DNA of 64,000 nucleotides from the NCBI GenBank assembly GCA_016748015.1, contig JAAOMT010000710.1, positions 620,001 through 684,000 on the forward strand, given 5' to 3'. The notes below the pieces were generated by a model. It had not been told where the DNA came from. It made no database searches and saw only the letters and a list, made by a program, of their open reading frames with translations. Position numbers and translations under genes: made by a program. Positions 9,401 through 25,300 of this stretch are shown here, piece by piece. The first letter of the stretch is position 1. Every line of letters starts with the position of its first letter. The stretch is from Geosiphon pyriformis uo1. Its lineage: Eukaryota > Fungi > Glomeromycota.

Positions 9401-12100
9401 CTTGCTTGTGAATGGAATTCAGATGCACATCCAAAAGTCTATCCAAACCCACATGCACAGAAACTGCTCTATGATCAAAGTCAAAATGGTCACCAATATC
9501 AGCTACACCATGATTAATTACTGTACTAACCAAGTTGTAAGAAACAAATATGTAATCAATAGTCTTAGAAACACCTCAAGAGTTAGTCCACATTGGCATT
9601 TTAACAAACAAGCTCCCACCCAAAGAATTAACCAAGCTGAGATCCAAGCATTTCTTGAAACTAGCACTCTTACATAAACTATTTTCATTGAAATCACCAC
9701 CCAGCACAATGAAAGAGGATTTATTCACAGCTCTGGCAATCAGCAAATTGATGTTACCAGCCTGAGAAAACTGAACATCCAAAGAAGTGCCAGCATACAG
9801 TCCCAAAATTGTAACAGAAAGTTTGTTATTAAAAAGTAATCTAATAGAGAAGAGCCTTCCAGACACCTCAGAAACCTTACAAACATATCTTGCCAGAGAG
9901 TTGTCCATGATGATTGCTACACCAGAACCCAAGTGACCAGAATTCAGACCAGAGGTAAAAACTCGAACACCATTGAATTTATTAATAATCCAAGAACAAA
10001 CTCTGTCTCTTAACTTTGTTTTAGTAAAAATTGAAATCAAATTGTTCATATTTTTGTGCCAATGAATAATGTCATCCTGCTTGGCAGGATTGTTTATCCC
10101 TTTAACATTGCAAGTGGCAATCTTCCAAACTAGACTGGTCATTAAGATGGAAGAAGAACTAAAGAACCCGCACCCGAACACAAACGATCTAACCTTTCCA
10201 AAACTGAACCAATTAAGACCTCAAAAGCTACCATTTTCGATTCCAATTCACCCACTTTGGAGGTCAGAACCTTGGAAAAACTTGAACTAGAATCATGGAC
10301 AATGTCATCAACAGCTAAGGGAGGAGAAGTAGAAGCCAATATCATATTATCCAAAACCATATCCACATCCAAACACAGTACCAAGAGGGTGGGATTGGCT
10401 GGGGGAAAAACACTAGAAGAGGTTACCATTGGTACCAGTTCCATGCCATTTAACTTTTTCAATATGTTGGACATCTGATCCATTAAAAGCTCCAAGGAGC
10501 ATTCCAAAATGTTCAGACAAGCATTCAAAAAAGAGTTATCAGCTAAGATGAGAGGAGAATCATTGATTGAATCTGAGACACCAAAAAAGGGGGGACTAGT
10601 ACTGGAACCATTACTGAAATGAGAACCACCAGAAAAACCAGCAAGTGAGACCACTTAAGCCCAAGATTTGCCACCAAAGGCAGTGGGCCAAGATATCAAA
10701 ACATCTTTTTTTTCATATAGCTTTGCCAATTGAAGATGACATTCATCAGGTGCAACTCTTTTAAATATTCTTGAAGGCCTAAATGGGGATGCAACAGGTG
10801 CATCACATTCCAGAGCAGAATGACCAAACTTCCTGTATTTTTCACACCAAACCAGATCCATCCTCACCCAAGAAAGTTTAATGCCACCAAGAATTGGCTC
10901 TGTACAAAAAGCAGATTCTAGATCATTATTAAATTCAAAACCAACTACAGCACAACGAATCCTATTACTGGTTTCCAAAGATCTGTTTATAACACAAGTT
11001 TTTCCACCAGTCTTATTCAGAAGAGTTCCAAGATCATGTGCTGTTGTTCTCACCAGCAAAGTAAACAAAAGTGCTCTAAATTAATTCCTCGAAGCCCAAG
11101 TCTTATGATCTCCCACTGCTTTGGCCACATGCACAGAGTCCTTACCAATCAAGAAAAACCACTTAAAGGCCAACAAATTAGCTTGGTCAAGCTTAGCAAA
11201 CTCTACCATAGCTTTTTGCCACATTCCAATTAGTTGAATTTTGATTGACTTAATTTTCCCAAATTTGGATACTGTGACAATGATCATATCTTTAGGTGTA
11301 TCCATGAGAATTTCTTTAATTATCACAGCCTGATCTGACCTCATTTTTTGTCTCTTAAGATCGCTGTTTACGTCAATCCCTTTTTTTCTGGCCAATGATA
11401 CAGCCATTTCTATGCTCTGTTCAGAAATAAATGTTGATTGGATGATCTCTTCAAATTTTGAGAGAATAGTGGCCCCCCCAAAACCATTGACTGAAAAAAA
11501 TAATTTCCTGATGACTTGAGTTTTGGCTGTTGCAGATTTCTCTTCCACAGCTAATAGATTAATGTCTAAAGCAAAAAACTTTTTGACTAACACTTCTATT
11601 GGGGTTTTAATGATATTTGGGTCAATCCACTTTTTTTCCAGAGAGATAGACAAGCAAGGAAGAAGCACAATTTCATCATCATCCATAGTGAAATCAGGAG
11701 ACCCAAGTGGAGAACCAAACATAGTACTAGTATTAACATGTTTCACCTTGGGAGTAGTTGCAGCTAAACCCAAAAGAGACCTTCCATTCACACCTGACAT
11801 GCCAACATCCTCATTATTACCAGACAGACTATCCAAATCAGAATACACACTATCACTAAGCCCAGATTTACTCAAAGAAATATCCTTCTTGTCACCAGAG
11901 TATTTAACATTTCCAAGAACCACCTTTTTTTTCTGAGTGAAAGAACTATCAGCAGGACCATGGAAAGCACTTTTGGGCGCCTTTTTTTTTGACATATTAC
12001 CACCCAAAGCAGTTTTTAAATCCATGACAAAAGAGTTATTATTTAAAAAAATATTGAAAAAACTAACAAGAAAAAATAAAAAACTTCTATTTCAGAAAAT
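6440..12100 (-). mobile_element. LINE (non-LTR retrotransposon), degenerate: ORF1 (RRM-like + CCHC knuckle, 12025-10142) and ORF2 (APE endonuclease, RT, RNase H)
   Basis: ORF1 SIKIQLIGMWQKAMVEF and CEKYRKFGHSALEC; ORF2 WKIATCNVKGINN, GGDFN, FDHRAV (APE); MIPKP..PIALIE, KAYDSV, FVNDMIW, RYLG (RT); VYMDGSL..ELQAI (RNase H). Confidence 0.93.
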
Positions 12101-12119
12101 GTGCTTTTTTGAGAATTTT

Positions 12120-12560
12120 TAGAGGTAAGAGAAAAAGAAGTTTTTTTTATATTTTTTATTTTATAAAATTTTTTAAAATTTTATTATCTTTTATTATTTT
12201 TATATTATTTTATTATTTTATATTTATATTATTTTGTATTATTATTATTATTTATTTTATATTATTTATATTTATTTTAAATTATATTTTTGTCCTATTT
12301 TTTTTGTAATTAATTGGTTTTTTATTTAAATAATATATATAAAATTAAAAATATTTTATAATAAATACAATTTATGTTTTGTTTATATATTATTAATTAT
12401 TTAAGTTATATTATATATTACAACTTAAATTTTTAAATAATTTATTATTAATTAACATATAATTAACTAATAAATAAATACTTAAAAAAAATTAATTTTA
12501 TTATATAAATTAAAATAACTTAAATACTTAAATTTAAAAATAATTTTAATATTTAAATAT
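12120..12560. repeat. Extremely AT-rich low-complexity block between two divergently oriented LINE pieces
   Basis: Almost no G/C over ~440 bp. Confidence 0.8.
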
Positions 12561-17000: not shown

Positions 17001-18489
17001 CAGCTGCCCAGTAAACTAGATCTCAACAATAAAATTCAGGAACTAATTATGTTAAAAACCCAAATGCTTAACACTATTTAAGTTTTTTGGTAGTCTTAGA
17101 AACAGCCACATCCAATTCATTAGAAATCAATTAAGAAGAAACCATATCTATTAGCAATATCTCATTAACTGCCATTACAGAAAATAAATTGCTCATTGTA
17201 ATATTCCTCTTCAAAATTGAAGAATCAGTCCCTATACTTTTATTTAGTAAAACTGCCCTAGAATGAAAACTCATCACAGCAATATATACTGATGTTACAA
17301 TAGATGTTTAGTTTATCAAACTGATTTTGAACAGTGGATCAGCTGGCAGCATCATTATACAATAACTTATAGACCAATTAAATTACCAAATTGATTGTGC
17401 TGTCAGTATCAGAATTATTACCACCAATAAAACAATGAAAATATCTATTGGTAAGATTGACAATTTCCCATTTGAAATTAATGACATTATTACATTCATA
17501 AAGGTTTTTATTATAAAAGCCACACAGTACCAAACTCTAATTGGTAATAACTAACTGTCTAAAACCAATGCTATATTTAACTAAACCACCCAAAAATTGC
17601 AACTCAACCAAAATGATTAATACACTTAAGTACCAACCACCTGTGGTTATTTTAAACCCAACACCACACTGGTACCATTTATTGAATTTAAAAAAAAAAG
17701 AGAAAAAACCTACTTGGAAAACTTATCAAGTCTTTTAAATTAACAATGACCACAACAATTTATCACCAATATCTATTTAAAAAGAAAAGAAAAAAAAAAA
17801 GAAAAAGAAAGAGAAAAGAAAAAACTCCAAGCAACTATCTTTACATATATTACATATATTGCTACCACTCAATGCCAGCCAAATTATTATCAACCCAAAC
17901 TAATTTGTGTCAATTGTGATAAAAAATTGTTAACAATAAGCACATGTTGTGGTAACAATGAGAAATGGCCAATTACAACAAAATATTACTGTCACTCATG
18001 CATTTTTAAACACTTTGAATAGCCAAAAAAACAAGAAAAATAGGACAATAAACTATGTCTTACTTGTAAAGAAACTCTCCTAGATGAAGGAATGTGAAAC
18101 GACATTCCTAATCATAGAGAAACATGCAACAAATTATGTCAGTACATGATTCTGATCAGCAATTGGGTAAGAAAAAAAACACCAATAGACACTGTTTGAA
18201 AAAAAGCTGTTAAATGTTTAGATAATTGTTCATATAATAACAACAAAATCTGGAGAATCGCAATTACCAAAATTGAAGACATAATGTTAGAAGAAATAAA
18301 AACAATTAAAAACAACCCACCAGAATCCAAAAAAATCATTTGAATCCTAAACTCTGATATTATCCTTGATGTTATAGATCCAGAACAATTTCACAAACAC
18401 TACCAAGAATTGGCACCCACTAAAAAAAAGCTAAACACCCAACTATGTGACCATTATTTAATACTATGTGACTTTCAATATTGTAATAA
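14018..18489 (+). mobile_element. Gypsy element C, 5' part: LTR 14018-14907, decayed PBS, gag, CCHC knuckle, protease, Cys-rich domain; heavily AT-mutated
   Basis: tattactcat...tgtaaca; tttagtgttctctgt matches PBS of D; LILNSGSAGSII protease motif near 17320; ends CDFQYCN at the island junction. Confidence 0.88.
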
Positions 18490-18710
18490 TTACGTATTGT
18501 AGAAGCCGCAACAGTCTTTTCTTTAAGTAATTTATAAATTTCGAACGCCAATTTGTTAAATGAGAATTTTGGATCCGATTCGGTTCTTTTATCGTACAAT
18601 TGTCTTAGATGCCTCCACAACGTTTCGACATCTGGCGAATAAATTTTGTTCTCTGTTCGTTTCGTTATTGGTAAATTTCTGGACTTCATAGTCTTATTTA
18701 ATATTCTCAT
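18490..18710 (-). pseudogene. 3'-truncated putative helix-turn-helix protein
   Basis: FSFNKLAFEIYKLLKEKTVAASTIRNYY fits an HTH helix pair; CpG-rich; cut by the Gypsy junction at ~18490. Confidence 0.5.
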
Positions 18711-18997
18711 ATTGTGAGAGTTGGCTATTACAGAGCATGCCAAGAACGAAACCAAATAATATTCCAATGAAGAATTCGCTTGTGAATGTGAACATTTTTC
18801 GCAAAGCGAATCGATGAAACTGTTTGATATATTTGTTGATATATTTTGGTTATTTAACGATATTTAACGTGTTGTGGTTGCTTTTTCTGAAAGTAAGCGA
18901 CTAGTGCTTGCTTCTATAATAAAATCTTGCGCGATGATGCTTAAATAGACAAATGCGCGTTGCTGCGCATCAATTATCATTGGTCATTCTGCATACA

Positions 18998-20994
18998 ATG
19001 GACAATCGTGAAAGATCTCGAATGTTCCTACAAATACGTCATTGATTAAGCCACTGATCAGCGTTAGTATATTACGGTATTAGATCGCATTGCGCAGCAC
19101 TCTTCCTTACGAAAAAAAAGAAGGTCGAAAAAGTTGAACAAGCATTGACGAAGGCGGAGAAGGAGCTAGAAGATGCGAAGATGGCGTTGCAAGAGTTTAA
19201 TATGGGAGAGGACGGACAGTGGTTGGCTGAGCTGAAGAGGAAACTACGGAAGGAAGAAGGGACGGAGGCGCAGCGAGCCAGGTGGGAGACGGAGAAGACG
19301 GCGCTGGCGGACGAGGAGACCAGGCTGAAAGCAGAAGTGACCAAGTGGAGTGACGAGGTGCTGAAGAGGAGTGAAGACCTGCGACGGGCGCGGGCTCAAC
19401 CAGGTAACGACTTTGTGACTCGGGCGTTGGGGACATAGGGTAGAGTAGACGTAGAACAGTGTTAATGCGTTTTATTCTATTAAGTATTCCATACACACTC
19501 TTATTGCTTGCACCTTGTAATGTTATCCAATGTTTATTTAATCCGTTTTTTATACTTTCAGAACGTCTCCTAAATGAAGAAGAATATCTATCATCTATTC
19601 CTCCAACCATTGTTTATCCTCTGGATGCTAGTACTTCGACACGTTCTACGCGTAACGGGGGTCTCTGGCCATCAAGAATAATTCCCTGGAATGGATTTCT
19701 TGAAGAAGTAACTCAATTCAGCTTCGATCAAAAAGAGCGAAAGTTCAGTAGGCCCCAATTCGTTGAAGGTTTAAGAGCTCGTGTCGAAAATAGTGTTGAA
19801 ACTGCTATGGAAGTTAATATTTTTCATATATTGAACTCGCCTTTGTCCCCAACATTTGAGTTTTCGAAACAAAAAGATTCTGACTTTAATCCCGATGACC
19901 CGAACATTGGCCTTGGAAAACCAGATTTCACTTGCCGAAAGTATGATGGTCCTAATGATCATACAGGAAAAAGGATCATAAACATAGAAATCAAAAGAGA
20001 TTGTGTTATGACACAGTTACGAGAGACTAATTTAAGTGAATTATTTGATGAACACTTTACTGGTCATGCACGTGGCGATTTGGTTAACGTAATTAGTCTG
20101 ATTTACAACTATATGGTCGCGGACGAATTACAATATGGCATACTTGCAACCCATGATTACCATTGGTTCCTTTGCCGTCCAAGTGCTAATCCATCAATAC
20201 TATTAATTTCTAAATCTCTTCCGTTACAGTCAACAAGTCCGCCAGTACTCAAAACTTATGCATACTTGGTCGGCCTGGCAACAAGTGAACCTAATTCACC
20301 TCATCCAAATGTAATTTCAGGACGAACTAGACAAGATATCAGAGTACAAGGTTCCAGAATTCAAAACTCGGGTTTCTATAACCAAAGTTTCAGTCAAAGT
20401 TTGGGTCCAGATAGTAGTTATCACAACCAGCAAGGTTCCAGGGACCAGAGCTCTGAAGATCAAGATTCTATAACAGGAATAGAAGAACAGACTTATGGCT
20501 ACAAGGATTTCAAGCTTGAGGGTATTCTAGGATGTGGACAAACTGGGAGGACATTTCGAGCCAGATTCCATGGAGAGCCAATTGCTTTGAAGGTTATTGA
20601 TCTATATAAGGAAGCTGATCTCTTGCATAAAATTCGAAAAGAAATTGAAATATACAAAAATCTTGTCAAAATTCAAGGAATATATATTCCCAAATTGGTG
20701 TGTCATGGTTATTACGGATATGGGATGGGCTATTTTATGGGTGTCACTATTGTTGGTACTACTTTGAACAACCATAAAGTAAGTAGTAACCAAAAGTATA
20801 GAGCATTGGAGGCCTTAAATGCTATTCATAGTTATAATATTCTTCACAATGATATCCGACAAGAGAATATTTTGATTAATGAAAAAGGTGAAATTTATAT
20901 CATTGATTTTGGGATGTCTGTTGTAACTGATAATAGGGAGCTATTTTGTGAAGAGGAATGTGAATTATCCAGTTTATTAGATCGCTATATGTAA
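18998..20994 (+). CDS. Crinkler-like protein: coiled-coil header + PD-(D/E)xK nuclease-like domain + short atypical protein kinase; intron 19404-19561 (first micro-exon 18998-19007 and intron 19008-19067 tentative)
   Basis: CAG|GTAACG...TTTCAG| splice joins ORF 19145 to ORF 19459 in frame; KPDFT..IEIK..IYNYM..YGILAT..WFL; kinase GCGQTG, ALK, EIEIY, HNDIRQENIL, IIDFG; all six Trp are TGG. Confidence 0.82.
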
Positions 20995-21109
20995 TGAATA
21001 TTTGCACTATTAAAAGTAATAAAAACCTATTTGCTTAGAAAACGAATAAATGTATGATTGTCATGATTAGTGTGTAGAATTAAAATTATATATATAGGAT
21101 TACCCGTAT

Positions 21110-22614
21110 ATGGAAAATGATAACTATAATGGTTCTACCGAATATGAAAAGGCAATACGTTTTTTGGAGATAGGTTGCAATTGTGATTGTTCGAAAAAGA
21201 TTCCGAGAGAAAGGTTTGCTGAATTACGTGAAGCGTTTCAAGCACTCTCTGGACCCGAGCAAGATATATTTTTAATGGCCCAACTGAAAGCAATGAATGG
21301 CGGGGAAATAACTGCCAGTCAACGTCTTAAAAAGAAAACGCGAACTAATAAGCGAACGTTTTACTACTGAGATCGCAATACGCAGCTTTGTCAGAAAACG
21401 TATCTCAACATGTTAGGAATTGGTCGCACTCACTTCGAAAACGTCAGAAATCACCTAACGACGAATGGTATAATACCGCGTGTTCATGGTAATGTAAAAA
21501 GAGTGCCGCGATGGAAAACTAAAATAACCATTGATATAACCGTTGCTACCGCCGTGAAGAATTTTCTCGAAAACTATGCTGAAATTCATGGACTTCCAAG
21601 TCCTGGCAGAAACGTCAATCGCATTACTCAATCGCTTACACTTTTGCCAGCTGAAACAAGTTACAAGTCAGTCTATCGTGATTTTATTGCAGGTCTCGAA
21701 AATGATAGCACGTTAAAATTGTTAAAATATGACGCATTTCGCAAGTTATGGCACCAATTAATGCCTTATATTCAAATTATGAGTCCAAGAACGGATTTAT
21801 GTGACACGTGCCAACATTTTCGGAACGGCTTACAGTATAACGCTCGTAAAGAAGAAGAGGCAAAAGACTTACTAAAGAAATTCAAAGAACATCTGGTTAA
21901 GGCTAAATTAGAGAGAAATTATTACAACAAAAATACGAAATTAGCAGAACAACAGAGGAAATTGGTAAATGAACATTTTATAACAAGAGGTAAAGCTGAT
22001 TATTGTAGCGTTGACGCTACTGCTCATTACAGTTACGATTGAGCGCAAAACGTTCACGTACCCCATTCCGATCAACAGGTAAGTAAAATTTATTATCTTA
22101 GTCCGCGTAAAGTACATTTATTTGGTATCCAAGATGAAGCAGTACGCGAACAAATCAATTACGTTCTTGATGAGAACGAAATAATAGGGAAAGGCCCTAA
22201 TGGCACCCTGAGCATGGTATTCAATGGAATTAAGAGACTGAATAAAGGCGAAAAACATCTAAAGATTACTTGTGATAATGCGGGTGGTCAGAATAAAAAT
22301 AATGCCACCATTTGATTTTACCTATATTTAGTAATTTGCGGTTATTACGAAAGTATCGAATTAAATTTCATGGTACCTGGACATACCAAATTTAAGTGTG
22401 ATGGTAGGTTTGGATTGATTAAAAAGCTTTATCGAAAAACAACAGTAGATTGTGTGGATCACATTGTTGAAGTTGTGAAAAAATCAAGTACAGCGGGATT
22501 AAACAAAGTTCAGTGTTATGAAAACGGCAAAGGCTTTCAATACTTAGATCTTAATTCCGTGTTGGGAATTTTTTTTAAGAAATTGAGTGGTTTACAAAAG
22601 TATCAGCATTTTCT
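21110..22614 (+). mobile_element. Sola1-like DDD transposase, continuous only if TGA=Trp; runs into N-gap
   Basis: One frame of ~500 codons; DLCDTC, HYSYD*AQNVH, TCDNAGGQNKN, VPGHTKFKCDGRFG; only stops are TGA at 21368, 22040, 22313. Confidence 0.85.
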
Positions 22615-23161
22615 NNNNNNNNNNNNNNNNNNNNNNNNNNNNNNNNNNNNNNNNNNNNNNNNNNNNNNNNNNNNNNNNNNNNNNNNNNNNNNNNNNNNNN
22701 NNNNNNNNNNNNNNNNNNNNNNNNNNNNNNNNNNNNNNNNNNNNNNNNNNNNNNNNNNNNNNNNNNNNNNNNNNNNNNNNNNNNNNNNNNNNNNNNNNNN
22801 NNNNNNNNNNNNNNNNNNNNNNNNNNNNNNNNNNNNNNNNNNNNNNNNNNNNNNNNNNNNNNNNNNNNNNNNNNNNNNNNNNNNNNNNNNNNNNNNNNNN
22901 NNNNNNNNNNNNNNNNNNNNNNNNNNNNNNNNNNNNNNNNNNNNNNNNNNNNNNNNNNNNNNNNNNNNNNNNNNNNNNNNNNNNNNNNNNNNNNNNNNNN
23001 NNNNNNNNNNNNNNNNNNNNNNNNNNNNNNNNNNNNNNNNNNNNNNNNNNNNNNNNNNNNNNNNNNNNNNNNNNNNNNNNNNNNNNNNNNNNNNNNNNNN
23101 NNNNNNNNNNNNNNNNNNNNNNNNNNNNNNNNNNNNNNNNNNNNNNNNNNNNNNNNNNNNN
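22615..23161. other. Assembly gap (others at 35067-35282, 40674-40693, 41453-41968, 46327-46664)
   Basis: Runs of N. Confidence 1.
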
Positions 23162-23974
23162 TTTTGAGAAAATTCCCAAATTGTTTATTCTACTACCCGT
23201 GGTTCTAGACTAAATGAAAAGGCATGAGAATATTCTTATGTTGACAAAGATGATCCAAATGAGAAAAAGAATATTGAAATGTTAGCTAATGGAAATTTAA
23301 AAAGAAGAATAAAAGCCAATCTAGAACCTCACTATAGTAATCTTCCCAAATTCTATGACCGAACCTTTTATCTTTCATTAGCCCAAGAATTATTGCAGGC
23401 TTTAAAAGAACTAATTAGTGAATTAGTGATTATCAGTGCTATGGTCAAAGGTCGGAAAAATGCTGGAAAAGCAAAGAAAGACAAATTCATTAAAAATTTT
23501 GCTAATTTTTCTCAAAGCAGATTGGTTTTAATAGAAACAGTAATTCCCAAAAAAAGTGAAGAAGAAAGAAGGGATGGCTATAAATCTACTCGCTGAGATT
23601 ATATAAAAGAAAATATTCCTGATTTTGATATTTTTATTGATGATTCTCTGATCATTATTGAAGAAACTAATAAGTTATTACCTGATAAAACTTATGTCAT
23701 ACCAGCTTATAAATGCAACCAAAATCTCAAAGCTCCCAACATCTATCATGTAGCAACTAGTGCCACTGATTTAAAAGACAGTGATTTTGTTATTGCTGTC
23801 TTTGAGATGAAAAATAACCAGTTAAAGAAAAAATTAAAATTTCTGCAAATACAAGAGAGAAACAGTTGAGTTTTTTGGATGATAATTAGTGGATCACTAA
23901 TTTTTATCTTAGTTGCTTTAGTATTAGTAGTTAAAATTACAATAGTGCAGAAAAAACGTTTTAGAAAGAATTAA
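23162..23974 (+). CDS. Mollicutes-like (code 4) HAD-fold-like protein with C-terminal membrane anchor, 5' end in gap
   Basis: 270 codons with TGA at 23165, 23225, 23594, 23867 as the only internal stops; LVIISA and DFDIFIDD resemble HAD motifs II and IV; hydrophobic helix followed by KKRFRKN; no introns. Confidence 0.7.
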
Positions 23975-24161
23975 AAATTATTGACAAAGATCAGATCAAG
24001 CCATTATTTTTTGTTCTTGGTAATTCATAAGTGATTTTTTCTTGATCTAGATATTTCTGGAGAGTTTGGGTATCATTGATTTTAAAAACATAAGGGGCAA
24101 TTTTTTCTCCTTGAGCTTTCTTTAAAATGCTTCTAATGGTGCTGTAATTTTTGAATTCCAT
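23961..24161 (-). CDS. Short convergent code-4 ORF (probably a 3' remnant), overlapping the previous stop by 14 bp
   Basis: MEFKNYSTIRSILKKAQGEKIAPYVFKIND...GLI(TGA 23993-23991)SLSIIFNSF*; bacterial-style tail-to-tail overlap. Confidence 0.45.
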
Positions 24162-24439
24162 AGTAGATTTAATGTAAATTAGTTTTATATTAATATTTTT
24201 TTATATAGTAATAGAGATAATCCTATATTAATTATGTTATGGTTTATATTCATCATATTCTGGTATAATAAAGTGAACATTAAAATTTACAAGTTCATAA
24301 GTTATGAATGAACACCATTATTACTTTTCAAAATGTCATCAATCATACTAGTCAATTTTACAGTCATATTACAATCAGCTTCTCATTTATGTCACATAGT
24401 AAAATGTTTACTTTGTCTGGTTTTGTTATAGCATGCCCC

Positions 24440-25300
24440 ATATTATTAAACTAAATGAAAAAATAGCACAGGCAATATTCTTATTTTTGGTAAAAATAAA
24501 TCAGTTAGTATTAGTAAAAACAAGAGATTACAACAAGAGAAAAAAATAAATTTGAATCAATAGATAGAATAAATATATTAGTTAATATGACAGAAAAAAA
24601 AATTATTAACAAGAAAAAAATTATCTTTACTAGTTAATTGATTTCCATTCCACCATATGATTAGTATTTAATAGCTATAGAAAGAAAAATAAGAAATTAG
24701 CCCCAAATTTTTAAAGTGGAACCAACTATTTGTAAACCAAGAGAGATTGTTATTACTAATCTCTATATACTGGTTAAAATTAACAAGCATATTAAAATTT
24801 TTATCTACAACACAATAGAAGACACCATTAAAATATCAAGTAGAATAATCATTGGATATTTGAGTACTAAAGTTGAAGACCAATCACCAAATACCATTTT
24901 AGATTTTCTATAACTGTACAAATATGTAGACATTACATCACAAACCATATACAAATGAGAAAAATACTATTTGCTCCAATTAGAACAATTAGAACAAACA
25001 AACTTGGGAAATTTAAACTCATTTCAATGAATACAGCTCAAAATTTTACTTAACAATTTTACTAATATCTTTGCAAATAAAAACAAATTTGATAGAATTG
25101 ACATTATCTAGCACTAAATTAAGATTGGAGATACAATGCTAATTAAACAAAAAACATACAAAATATTACCAATAAGCCATGAAATTATTTGACAAAAAAT
25201 CAGATGTTAGATAATGGGTTAATTCAACTATTTATAAGTTCATGATCATTATTAGTGGTATTAATTCAGAAAAAGAATGGAAAAATTTATTTTTGTGTGG
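24440..25300 (+). mobile_element. Continuation of Gypsy element C pol (dUTPase C-term to RT N-term); resumes at 53238 after element D
   Basis: IIKLNEKIAQAIFL ... KIYFCV| and |DYRKLNSITYGDSY at 53238. Confidence 0.85.

Follow-up and report, generated by a model that had tools for sequence, protein, structure and literature searches.

A Sola1-like transposon family of Geosiphon pyriformis whose core genes use TGA for tryptophan and whose cargo follows the standard code

The window considered here, a stretch of 64,000 nucleotides from Geosiphon pyriformis uo1 (assembly GCA_016748015.1, contig JAAOMT010000710.1, forward-strand positions 620,001 to 684,000), harbors at about 18490–24442 a transposon copy that is nested in a Gypsy element of nuclear DNA and whose outer 5′ terminal inverted repeat (TIR) is missing. 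Its central gene is a single 501-codon frame on the forward strand (21110–22614), in which translation reveals TGA as the only stop, at 21368, 22040, and 22313 in the contexts FYY*DR, YSYD*AQN, and NATI*FYLY, respectively. The frame contains two TGG codons (21512 and 21749), no TAA or TAG and no frameshift, and its observed/expected CpG ratio is 1.33. A preliminary description of the locus had reported these three stops, the two TGG codons, the otherwise undisturbed frame and the retained CpG, all of which proved correct. Beyond 22614 the frame runs on into an assembly gap (N at 22615–23161); the full open reading frame (ORF) in complete copies comprises 583 codons with a TAA end, and 21110–22614 represents codons 1–501 of this 583-codon DUF7869 transposase. 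In the core genes of the element, i. e., the transposase and the ORFs downstream of it, TGA encodes tryptophan, while the cargo gene upstream is fungal and written in the standard code. Relatives of the transposase are encoded by Mollicutes-related endobacteria (MRE). The features of the window copy are listed in the following, with nuclear codon counts referring to 31 Geosiphon copies projected onto the full coding sequence (tryptophan columns 87, 135, 214, 311, and 402) and invariance to a distant set of 31 full-length DUF7869 proteins (31–45 % identity).

18490–19458, forward strand: 5′ interior of the element, lacking the outermost ~350 bp of the long 5′ TIR; left edge abutting the Gypsy element
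19459–20994, forward strand: kinase-like cargo ORF of 511 codons with 3 TGG, 0 TGA and a TAA stop; standard code
21060–21109, forward strand: conserved leader TAAAAT..TATATATAGGATTACCCGTAT, directly 5′ of the transposase ATG, with T at −3
21110–22614, forward strand: transposase gene, codons 1–501 of 583 (DUF7869, Sola1-like), 3′ part lost to the assembly gap
21368–21370, forward strand: TGA, tryptophan column 87; TGA in 26 of 31 nuclear copies, W in homologue P0062, TGA in the MRE copy
21512–21514, forward strand: TGG, tryptophan column 135; nuclear copies 18 TGG and 7 TGA, TGA in many metagenome copies
21749–21751, forward strand: TGG, tryptophan column 214, a tryptophan conserved throughout DUF7869; nuclear copies 19 TGG and 10 TGA, MRE copy TGA
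22037–22042, forward strand: first catalytic Asp (D310, GAT; invariant in 31 of 31) followed by TGA, tryptophan column 311; MRE copy TGA, annotated as W
22274–22276, forward strand: second catalytic Asp (D389), motif CDNAGGQNKN; invariant in 31 of 31
22313–22315, forward strand: TGA, tryptophan column 402; nuclear copies 19 TGA and 2 TGG, MRE copy TGA, annotated as W
22400–22402, forward strand: third catalytic Asp (D431), motif GHTKFxCD; invariant in 31 of 31
22615–23161, no strand: assembly gap (N) covering transposase codons 502–583 and the start of ORF2; the stretch is present in copy C673 (L031)
23162–23974, forward strand: portion of ORF2 outside the gap, coding for an unknown protein whose C terminus forms a hydrophobic helix; TAA stop at 23972
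24010–24438, forward strand: long 3′ TIR with the end ...TTTACTTTGTCTGGTTTTGTTATAGCATGCCCC, matching the inverted 5′ TIRs of copies L031, L036, and L041
24439–24442, no strand: ATAT flank, presumed 4-bp target-site duplication of the AWWT type

Gypsy homology stops near 18490 on the left and restarts near 24440 on the right. The interval 18508–19444 aligns at 75 % with the segment of metagenome copy L065 that lies immediately internal to its 5′ terminus, and a counterpart of the 3′ TIR was not found in 18000–21200. The leader stays conserved even among clades whose synonymous sites are saturated. The visible ORF2 holds four in-frame TGAs (23165, 23225, 23594, and 23867) and one TGG, and a Pfam search of ORF2 returned no family.

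Comparison with the G. pyriformis genome (128 Mb, 792 contigs) returned at least 46 matches to 21110–22614. In the 30 other nuclear copies that were fetched (72–94 % identical), the three TGA columns of the window are almost always TGA. Over the five tryptophan columns, all 31 copies together carry 81 TGA, 47 TGG, 11 TAA, and 1 TAG codons (TGA versus TAG, binomial p = 3e-23), and 19 copies are devoid of any TAA or TAG. As plain G-to-A decay of TGG would generate TAG as commonly as TGA, the rarity of TAG argues that decay is not the cause. TGA accounts for 63 % of the tryptophan codons, as compared to 63–83 % for the A-ending codons of Lys, Glu, Gln, and Leu (TTR) in the same ORFs, and the polymorphism of the tryptophan columns equals that of ordinary synonymous sites of these amino acids. 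The same picture emerges from the best 80 of at least 180 stretches from JGI and NCBI soil and rhizosphere metagenomes: 73 of the 80 lack stops other than TGA at synonymous divergences (dS) up to saturation, every one has 2–5 TGAs over the five columns, none is all-TGG, and the tryptophan columns display TGA 216 times versus TAG 0 times. Transposase genes terminate with TAA (37) or TAG (1). The contexts 3′ of TGA are diverse and the same as those 3′ of TGG. In old decayed copies of the family, TAA, TAG, and TGA stops are mixed and the GC content of third codon positions (GC3) is low.

The identity of the encoded residue is evident from homologues. Close homologues carrying TGG show W at columns 87, 311 (P0047, P0051, P0067, and P0068), and 402 (P0047 and P0067), and in the distant set W occupies column 214 in 27 of 31 proteins and column 402 in 8, with F or Y at column 311; TGA is found at the family-wide W214 in many copies. 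Selection acts on the whole frame: the ratio of nonsynonymous to synonymous divergence (dN/dS) is 0.05–0.14 between copies (dS 0.28 to saturated), 0.02–0.24 within each of the four segments bounded by TGAs, and 0.16–0.19 in close nuclear pairs at dS 0.03–0.06. Given purifying selection downstream of every TGA, the entire ORF must have been translated during the history of the family. The proposal of the preliminary description that TGA means tryptophan here is thus supported by W in homologues, by TGA and TGG interchanging like synonymous codons and by selection across every TGA. The alignment of the three columns that it had called for gives Trp in the close homologues, with F or Y at 311 in the distant ones, and the TGAs are shared with at least 30 nuclear copies, a copy of Ambispora leptoticha, 80 of 80 soil metagenome copies, and the MRE copies. 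None of the outcomes that it had named as speaking against its proposal was borne out, namely near-identical nuclear copies with TGG at these sites combined with many other G>A changes in the present copy, non-tryptophan residues in homologues, or a lack of relatives in code-4 contigs.

Host genes and a Tc1-like element next to an intact copy of the transposon use the standard code. Interruptions by TGA alone number 0 in the HSP70 and tubulin exons of the host, the Tc1-like transposase employs TGG only, and the flanks of the elements do not open up when read in code 4. Among 35 DUF7869 matches in the genome, 17 have exactly one TGA and no other stops. ARAGORN found no tRNA in the window and 59 loci, and a comparison of about 112 kb of elements plus flanks with Rfam detected no known RNA; a scan of the genome lists 63 tRNAs. 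As a side observation, the stretch C202:239-10491 holds at least 13 tRNA matches in ~10 kb that repeat with a period of ~9.8 kb (239/373/475/575 versus 10072/10209/10314/10420). An organellar or bacterial nature of this contig is conceivable, as is a circular molecule whose assembly ran beyond its own end. Relatives of the transposase also occur among assembled contigs of rhizosphere and soil RNA libraries, in which no well-supported A>G change was seen at the three TGA sites, although assembled contigs cannot exclude editing. One such contig (L075), which starts at codon 2 and ends in A17, was considered as a polyadenylated transcript and rejected, as the same sample gives multi-gene DNA contigs; related genomic copies are A-rich at the same point, and the poly(A) reading was therefore dropped.

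The scores for DUF7869 (Pfam PF25273) exceed the gathering cut-off of 26 bits, with 66.8 bits (E 2.5e-18) for a stop-free piece (L085:3270-4076). In the window, 22316–22612 scores 34.3 bits, and the locus read through TGA 63.9 bits. The catalytic triad D310, D389, and D431 is invariant in all of the distant homologues. An AlphaFold (AF2) model of residues 312–580 reaches a predicted local distance difference test (pLDDT) score of 90, and its top 25 structural matches in VIA-align are all RNase H-like DDE transposases or integrases, among them Mos1 (Z 7.7, root-mean-square deviation 2.6 over 140 aligned residues). With Z below 8, the predicted RNase H-like fold leans on the consistency of this match list. 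Foldseek against the PDB gave no significant match, and NCBIfam holds no family for the transposase. As a separate observation, three DUF7869 matches (C692:618193-618591, C692:1351592-1351909, and C596:351142-351423) lie within very long open frames of 1036–1163 aa and may be domain fusions.

Full copies measure 6.3–7.2 kb and possess inverted termini of 300–430 bp (L031, L036, L041, and L038) that begin with GG and share the end ...GTTGCAGCAYGCCCC. Both ends of these four copies are flanked by ATAT or the one-off variants ATTT and ATAC, and the window copy, in which only the 3′ TIR is present, has ATAT at its 3′ end. The matching flanks suggest a duplication of a 4-bp target, with no empty site recovered. 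A 4-bp AWWT target site is the hallmark of Sola1 (PMC3845634), and Sola elements in fungi have been reported essentially from Glomeromycotina only (PMC5751038). On these grounds, the element is best described as a Sola1-type cut-and-paste transposon, with target site and triad pointing to Sola1 over the other Sola groups. Of the earlier label “eukaryote-type Sola1-like,” the second half agrees with the ATAT flanks, the GG termini, and the DDD triad, while the first half is doubtful in view of the bacterial insertion sequence (IS)-like relatives described below.

Downstream of the transposase, 1–2 further ORFs carry TGA at plausible tryptophan sites, amounting to 168 TGA versus 34 TGG when pooled; ORF2 of L116, which is homologous to ORF2 of the window, has 5 TGA and 0 TGG. 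Upstream lies a variable cargo ORF of 250–870 codons that is mostly kinase-like. In 21 non-redundant cargo ORFs, tryptophan is encoded by 112 TGG and 0 TGA, and 3 of the 21 terminate with TGA. This codon use differs from that of the transposase (Fisher p 9e-36) and of the downstream ORFs (6e-55). The window cargo (Pfam Pkinase, E 9e-16) is a member of a Glomeromycota Crinkler-type kinase family, with 89 % identity to Ambispora gerdemannii and ~50 % to relatives in Rhizophagus, Funneliformis, and Paraglomus; cargo homologues stand upstream of the transposase in L078, L041, L042, L062, and L072 as well. Cargo dN/dS is near 0.25. The genes of the element are compact, intronless, and co-directional, with spacers of 25–140 nt and a conserved leader resembling a −10 box and a Shine–Dalgarno (SD) motif. 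Two candidates were discarded in this comparison: upstream cargo ORFs that seemed to use 1–4 TGAs as tryptophan, in which the TGAs precede the start Met or are likely terminators, and a kinase homologue of R. irregularis, which is an ordinary host gene with no adjoining transposase.

Cargo and core have separate histories. L113:1108-3384 and L116:6994-9147 share an identical cargo (dS 0.002) and the same 138-nt junction, as opposed to a dS of 0.30 between the adjoining transposases, which indicates a recent module exchange between diverged elements; L080 and L086 display the reverse pattern.

Several further observations concern the architecture of individual lineages. The diverged elements at L116:81-4352 and L103:974-4266 (minus strand) have extra standard-code ORFs upstream of the cargo in common (559–600, 211–253, and 231 aa), and the 313-aa ORF of L116 perhaps equals the 293-aa ORF of L103; a Pfam search of these extra ORFs gave no family. 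Neither of the two shows a 5′ terminus within 9 kb, and some lineages may thus be much larger composites. At L095:4339-5790, and also in L050, L054, L063, L083, and L093, ORF2 and ORF3 share one frame with one stop codon between them, which is TAA in L095, the sole lineage in which this codon was read. ORF2 of L095 and its kin is a coiled coil, and ORF3 is Cys-rich and zinc-finger-like with a coiled coil. Two elements stand tail to tail about 350 bp apart at L050:6716-7107 and L063:5475-5866, with the same junction in two metagenome samples. Finally, Crinkler-domain and leucine-rich repeat (LRR) ORFs flank the transposase in place of a kinase at L139:4421-5083 and L140:8770-9117 and 11693-12358, on eukaryote-like contigs of 65–119 kb (GC ~41 %) from JGI sample 3300063414.

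The family is not confined to Geosiphon. A copy of Ambispora leptoticha encodes a 93.5 % identical protein with TGA at columns 87, 214, 311, and 402 and a TGG-only cargo, and named fragments also stem from Diversispora eburnea and Gigaspora rosea. The dS between the Ambispora copy and Geosiphon copies (0.42–0.47) falls inside the range among Geosiphon copies, which themselves form at least four deep lineages interleaved with environmental copies in the tree and all reside on contigs of 0.2–2.7 Mb. GC3 is lineage-specific (0.07–0.44), with values of 0.13, 0.32, and 0.39 for Geosiphon lineages and no common Geosiphon value. Together with the nesting of the Ambispora copy, this argues for repeated arrival from different outside pools. 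No match was obtained in a scan of IMG/VR or, by tblastn, among PLSDB plasmids.

In line with the earlier expectation of relatives in code-4 genomes, a protein search retrieved two proteins (P0428 and P0485) named “Candidatus Moeniiplasma glomeromycotorum,” i. e., an MRE. The MRE copies are found in three metagenome-assembled genomes (contigs L134–L138, up to 125 kb) amid dense bacterial genes, including ribosomal proteins S19, L2, L23, L3, and L9, an ABC transporter, type I restriction–modification, PemK, LRR, and LRR-kinase genes. The MRE gene is 62 % identical to the window over codons 2–86 and 59 % over codons 403–501 and carries TGA at the same columns 87, 214, 311, and 402; the NCBI code-4 translation places W at 311 and 402 in a downstream frame annotated as P0428. 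It is preceded by a related leader, AAAGTGAA..TATAAAATATAT..ATG. MRE chromosomes and fungal nuclear DNA accordingly both harbor the family, and its nuclear copies carry canonical Sola1 ends. The LRR-kinase gene of the MRE has 16 TGA and 5 TGG codons and shows the effect of long MRE residence on a fungal-type gene, unlike the TGA-free nuclear cargo. At L134:11020-13579 and L136:8629-11274, the DUF7869 gene is directly followed by type I restriction–modification genes (N6_Mtase and Methylase_S), and LRR or LRR-kinase genes follow these MRE loci within 3–8 kb. Geosiphon is known to harbor MRE (PMC13315312), transposases make up 1–8 % of annotated MRE genes (PMC4916391), and MRE have repeatedly acquired kinase and LRR genes from Glomeromycotina, which are multi-copy in the bacteria (PMC10507103).

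The nearest full-length relatives outside the clade are located on Desulfobulbaceae-type contigs (L125–L127; 35 % identity over residues 10–582) next to TonB receptors, histidine kinases, and acyl-CoA dehydrogenases. There, a DUF7869 gene of 651 aa recurs in identical form at no fewer than nine places in one ENA sample (L125/L126/L127:8001-9956) and looks like an active IS-like family that is unnamed in NCBIfam. As these closest outside relatives are bacterial multi-copy IS-like genes, the protein family is not specifically eukaryotic. For the same reason, the earlier scenario of a fungal transposon that was recoded in the endosymbiont and then returned describes only one conceivable direction of transfer. 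The shuttle in both directions that it implied likewise lacks near-identical copies on the two sides, the best MRE copy being 57–62 % identical.

In our estimation, it is somewhat probable that a symbiont-type code-4 core, for which the MRE are the most likely UGA=Trp system, has been joined to fungal cargo, with the core shaped in MRE and entering the nucleus repeatedly. The core lineages would evolve mainly in a diverse, fast-evolving, and recombinogenic MRE population; elements or excised transposon–transposase complexes would repeatedly reach the nucleus and integrate there, where recombination with fungal genes may supply the standard-code cargo. On fungal ribosomes, the window copy would yield no full-length transposase. 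The family may conceivably be the vehicle of the known exchange of kinase and LRR genes between fungus and MRE. An MRE reservoir would account for the neutral-looking TGA usage, the lineage-specific GC3, the nesting of the Ambispora copy, the prokaryote-like layout, and the −10/SD-like leader.

Several observations weigh against this reading. The precise ends and ATAT flanks imply that the transposase acted in the nucleus, so that an enzyme made in the bacterium must get there. The cargo is open, TGA-avoiding, and under constraint (dN/dS near 0.25), suggesting expression in the fungal cytoplasm, and the L113/L116 mosaic indicates that modules recombine where the cargo remains standard-code. 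All context-resolved copies of the 68–99 % identity clade lie in eukaryote-like DNA of low coding density, namely beside Gypsy, a TGG-only Tc1-like element, or an SNF5 gene; none was seen in a bacterial context, the MRE of Geosiphon itself being outside the search. A full-length protein above 45 % identity is absent from 1.84 billion representatives. The MRE copies, with 57–62 % identity, are an outgroup to the nuclear clade rather than its immediate source; the MRE gene is frameshifted near codon 275, and the second MRE copy is truncated. A search of the MRE locus for the TIR motif of the nuclear copies was negative with up to 3 mismatches allowed. Pattern scans for the transposase and for the kinase cargo found no match in 185,579 prokaryote species genomes; since the MRE copies surfaced later by protein search, such blanks reflect false negatives of the method or gaps in the collection.

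A variant that we regard as possible but tentative holds that one family operates on both sides of the symbiosis and in both codes, with the code difference acting as a compartment-specific expression switch and the element as a gene-exchange vehicle. With equal reserve, the core would then be expressible only in the UGA=Trp endobacteria or via an undiscovered fungal switch, and the cargo (kinase, LRR, Crinkler) only in the fungal cytoplasm.

The main rival, in our judgment rather unlikely, is a true nuclear transposon whose UGA codons are efficiently decoded as Trp in the fungal cytoplasm, with the MRE copies as a side branch. Decoding might rely on a suppressor tRNA, a UGA-reading tRNA-Trp variant, a weakened eRF1, or a condition-dependent switch, and the TGAs would then form a translational lock on the transposase while the cargo is freely expressed, a parallel to the early/late code switch of phages. 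Such a scenario fits with the exclusively eukaryote-type surroundings of main-clade copies with resolved context (intact ones included), the proper TIRs and ATAT flanks in nuclear DNA, a standard-code cargo with TGA terminators and modules shuffled beside the core, and the strong purifying selection even in close nuclear pairs (dN/dS 0.16–0.19); moreover, assembly errors may underlie many of the single-base “frameshifts” of Geosiphon copies, in which case intact nuclear copies would be common. It is opposed by the lack of any tRNA or known RNA in elements, flanks, or window and by HSP70 and tubulin exons as well as 112 cargo Trp codons without TGA. With as many as 5 TGAs in a transposase and 9 in an ORF2, decoding would have to be near-complete. 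TGA usage looks neutral rather than costly, the contexts 3′ of TGA are diverse and do not differ from those of TGG, and the MRE provide a natural code-4 host in which the same family occurs. To our knowledge, no UGA-to-Trp decoder of this kind has been described in fungi.

A-to-I editing of the mRNA (UGA to UGG) or low-level near-cognate read-through inserting Trp appears improbable. In yeast, tRNA-Trp is known to read through UGA, some ascomycetes correct stops by A-to-I editing, and little protein suffices for a transposase. However, the edited A is preferentially preceded by U in fungi (UAG), and it is precisely this codon that is avoided (TAG versus TGA 1 versus 81 in nuclear and 0 versus 216 in metagenome copies), which renders editing unlikely; the RNA-library contigs, which cannot exclude it, likewise lack well-supported A>G changes. 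Read-through would have to pass 3–14 leaky stops per element with negligible product, and for both processes the TGA share equals that of neutral synonymous codons. Still less credible is a core derived from a mitochondrial mobile element or plasmid, with organelle-derived nuclear copies. Fungal mitochondria do read UGA as Trp, and the long TIRs and compact intronless genes would suit such a source, but no organelle-like contig with a copy was seen among contigs that all measure 0.2–2.7 Mb, the enzyme is a DDD transposase with target-site duplications and not a polymerase-encoding plasmid, and the relatives that were found belong to MRE genomes and not to mitochondria. Plain decay, i. e., nonsense mutations of a dead master copy amplified in trans or parallel G-to-A hotspots, is refuted by the selection and codon-symmetry tests, for despite the GC-to-AT pressure evident in decayed copies, dN/dS is 0.02–0.24 downstream of every TGA, TGA:TAG is 81:1, 73 of 80 environmental copies lack TAA/TAG at dS up to saturation, TGA occupies a tryptophan position conserved throughout the protein family, and the same columns are TGA in a bacterial code-4 genome as well.

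Summed up, Sola1 transposons, endosymbiont-to-host transfer, and gene exchange between MRE and fungi are already known; in the literature, we found neither a report of a transposon with core and cargo in different genetic codes nor a named carrier of the MRE–fungus exchange. With a concrete transposon family present in both genomes and beside the exchanged gene classes, the movement of DNA from one partner to the other can be put to the test. Eukaryote-resident ORFs, in hundreds of copies from nuclei and the environment, are kept intact under a code that the host cytoplasm is not known to read, and either of the ensuing possibilities, frequent and ongoing symbiont-to-nucleus transfer or unrecognized fungal UGA decoding, would be notable. 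Standard-code gene callers split these genes into “hypothetical proteins” of 80–300 aa, which are numerous in public databases, and because the core genes are fragmented in this way, the annotation of transposable elements in arbuscular mycorrhizal fungi misses the family.

The Sola superfamily, described by Bao, Jurka, and Kapitonov in 2009 (as cited in PMC3845634 and PMC5751038), provides the closest comparison. Like Sola1, the present element is of the cut-and-paste type with TIRs starting with GG, ATAT (AWWT-type) flanks, and a DDD triad in an RNase H-like fold, the last of these predicted, and it shares with Sola1 a patchy distribution and signs of horizontal transfer. It differs in the use of TGA for Trp in the core, in its long TIRs of about 300–430 bp, in the combination of a standard-code cargo with 1–2 extra TGA-coded ORFs, and in having relatives in bacterial genomes. 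These DUF7869 IS-like transposases of MRE and other bacteria belong to the same family over their whole length; in contrast to the nuclear element, they sit among bacterial genes, and those of MRE are frameshifted or truncated and followed by type I restriction–modification genes. Horizontal exchange with MRE has been reported for kinase and LRR genes of Glomeromycotina or Mortierellaceae (PMC10507103, with Naito 2015 and Torres-Cortes 2015 cited there). Here, too, kinase-like, LRR, and Crinkler-type genes are found in or beside the nuclear elements and near the transposase in MRE; while these papers give transferred genes and no carrier, the present data place one transposon family with code-4 core genes on both sides.

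The coexistence of two gene sets under different codes in one mobile genome also recalls stop-codon-recoded phages. In these, as reportedly described by Ivanova in 2014 and Borges in 2022, early genes follow the standard code and late genes are recoded. Recoded phages bring along suppressor tRNAs and change codes inside a single cell, whereas no tRNA was found here and the two codes match two cohabiting organisms. Insertions of endosymbiont or organelle DNA into nuclei, such as Wolbachia inserts and nuclear mitochondrial DNA segments (NUMTs), are likewise known and resemble the present case as foreign-code DNA in a host nucleus. Unlike them, however, the elements described here are separate transposons, each bounded by its own termini and target-site flanks; they fall into many diverged lineages, and their ORFs are intact but for the TGAs and fused to a cargo in the code of the host.

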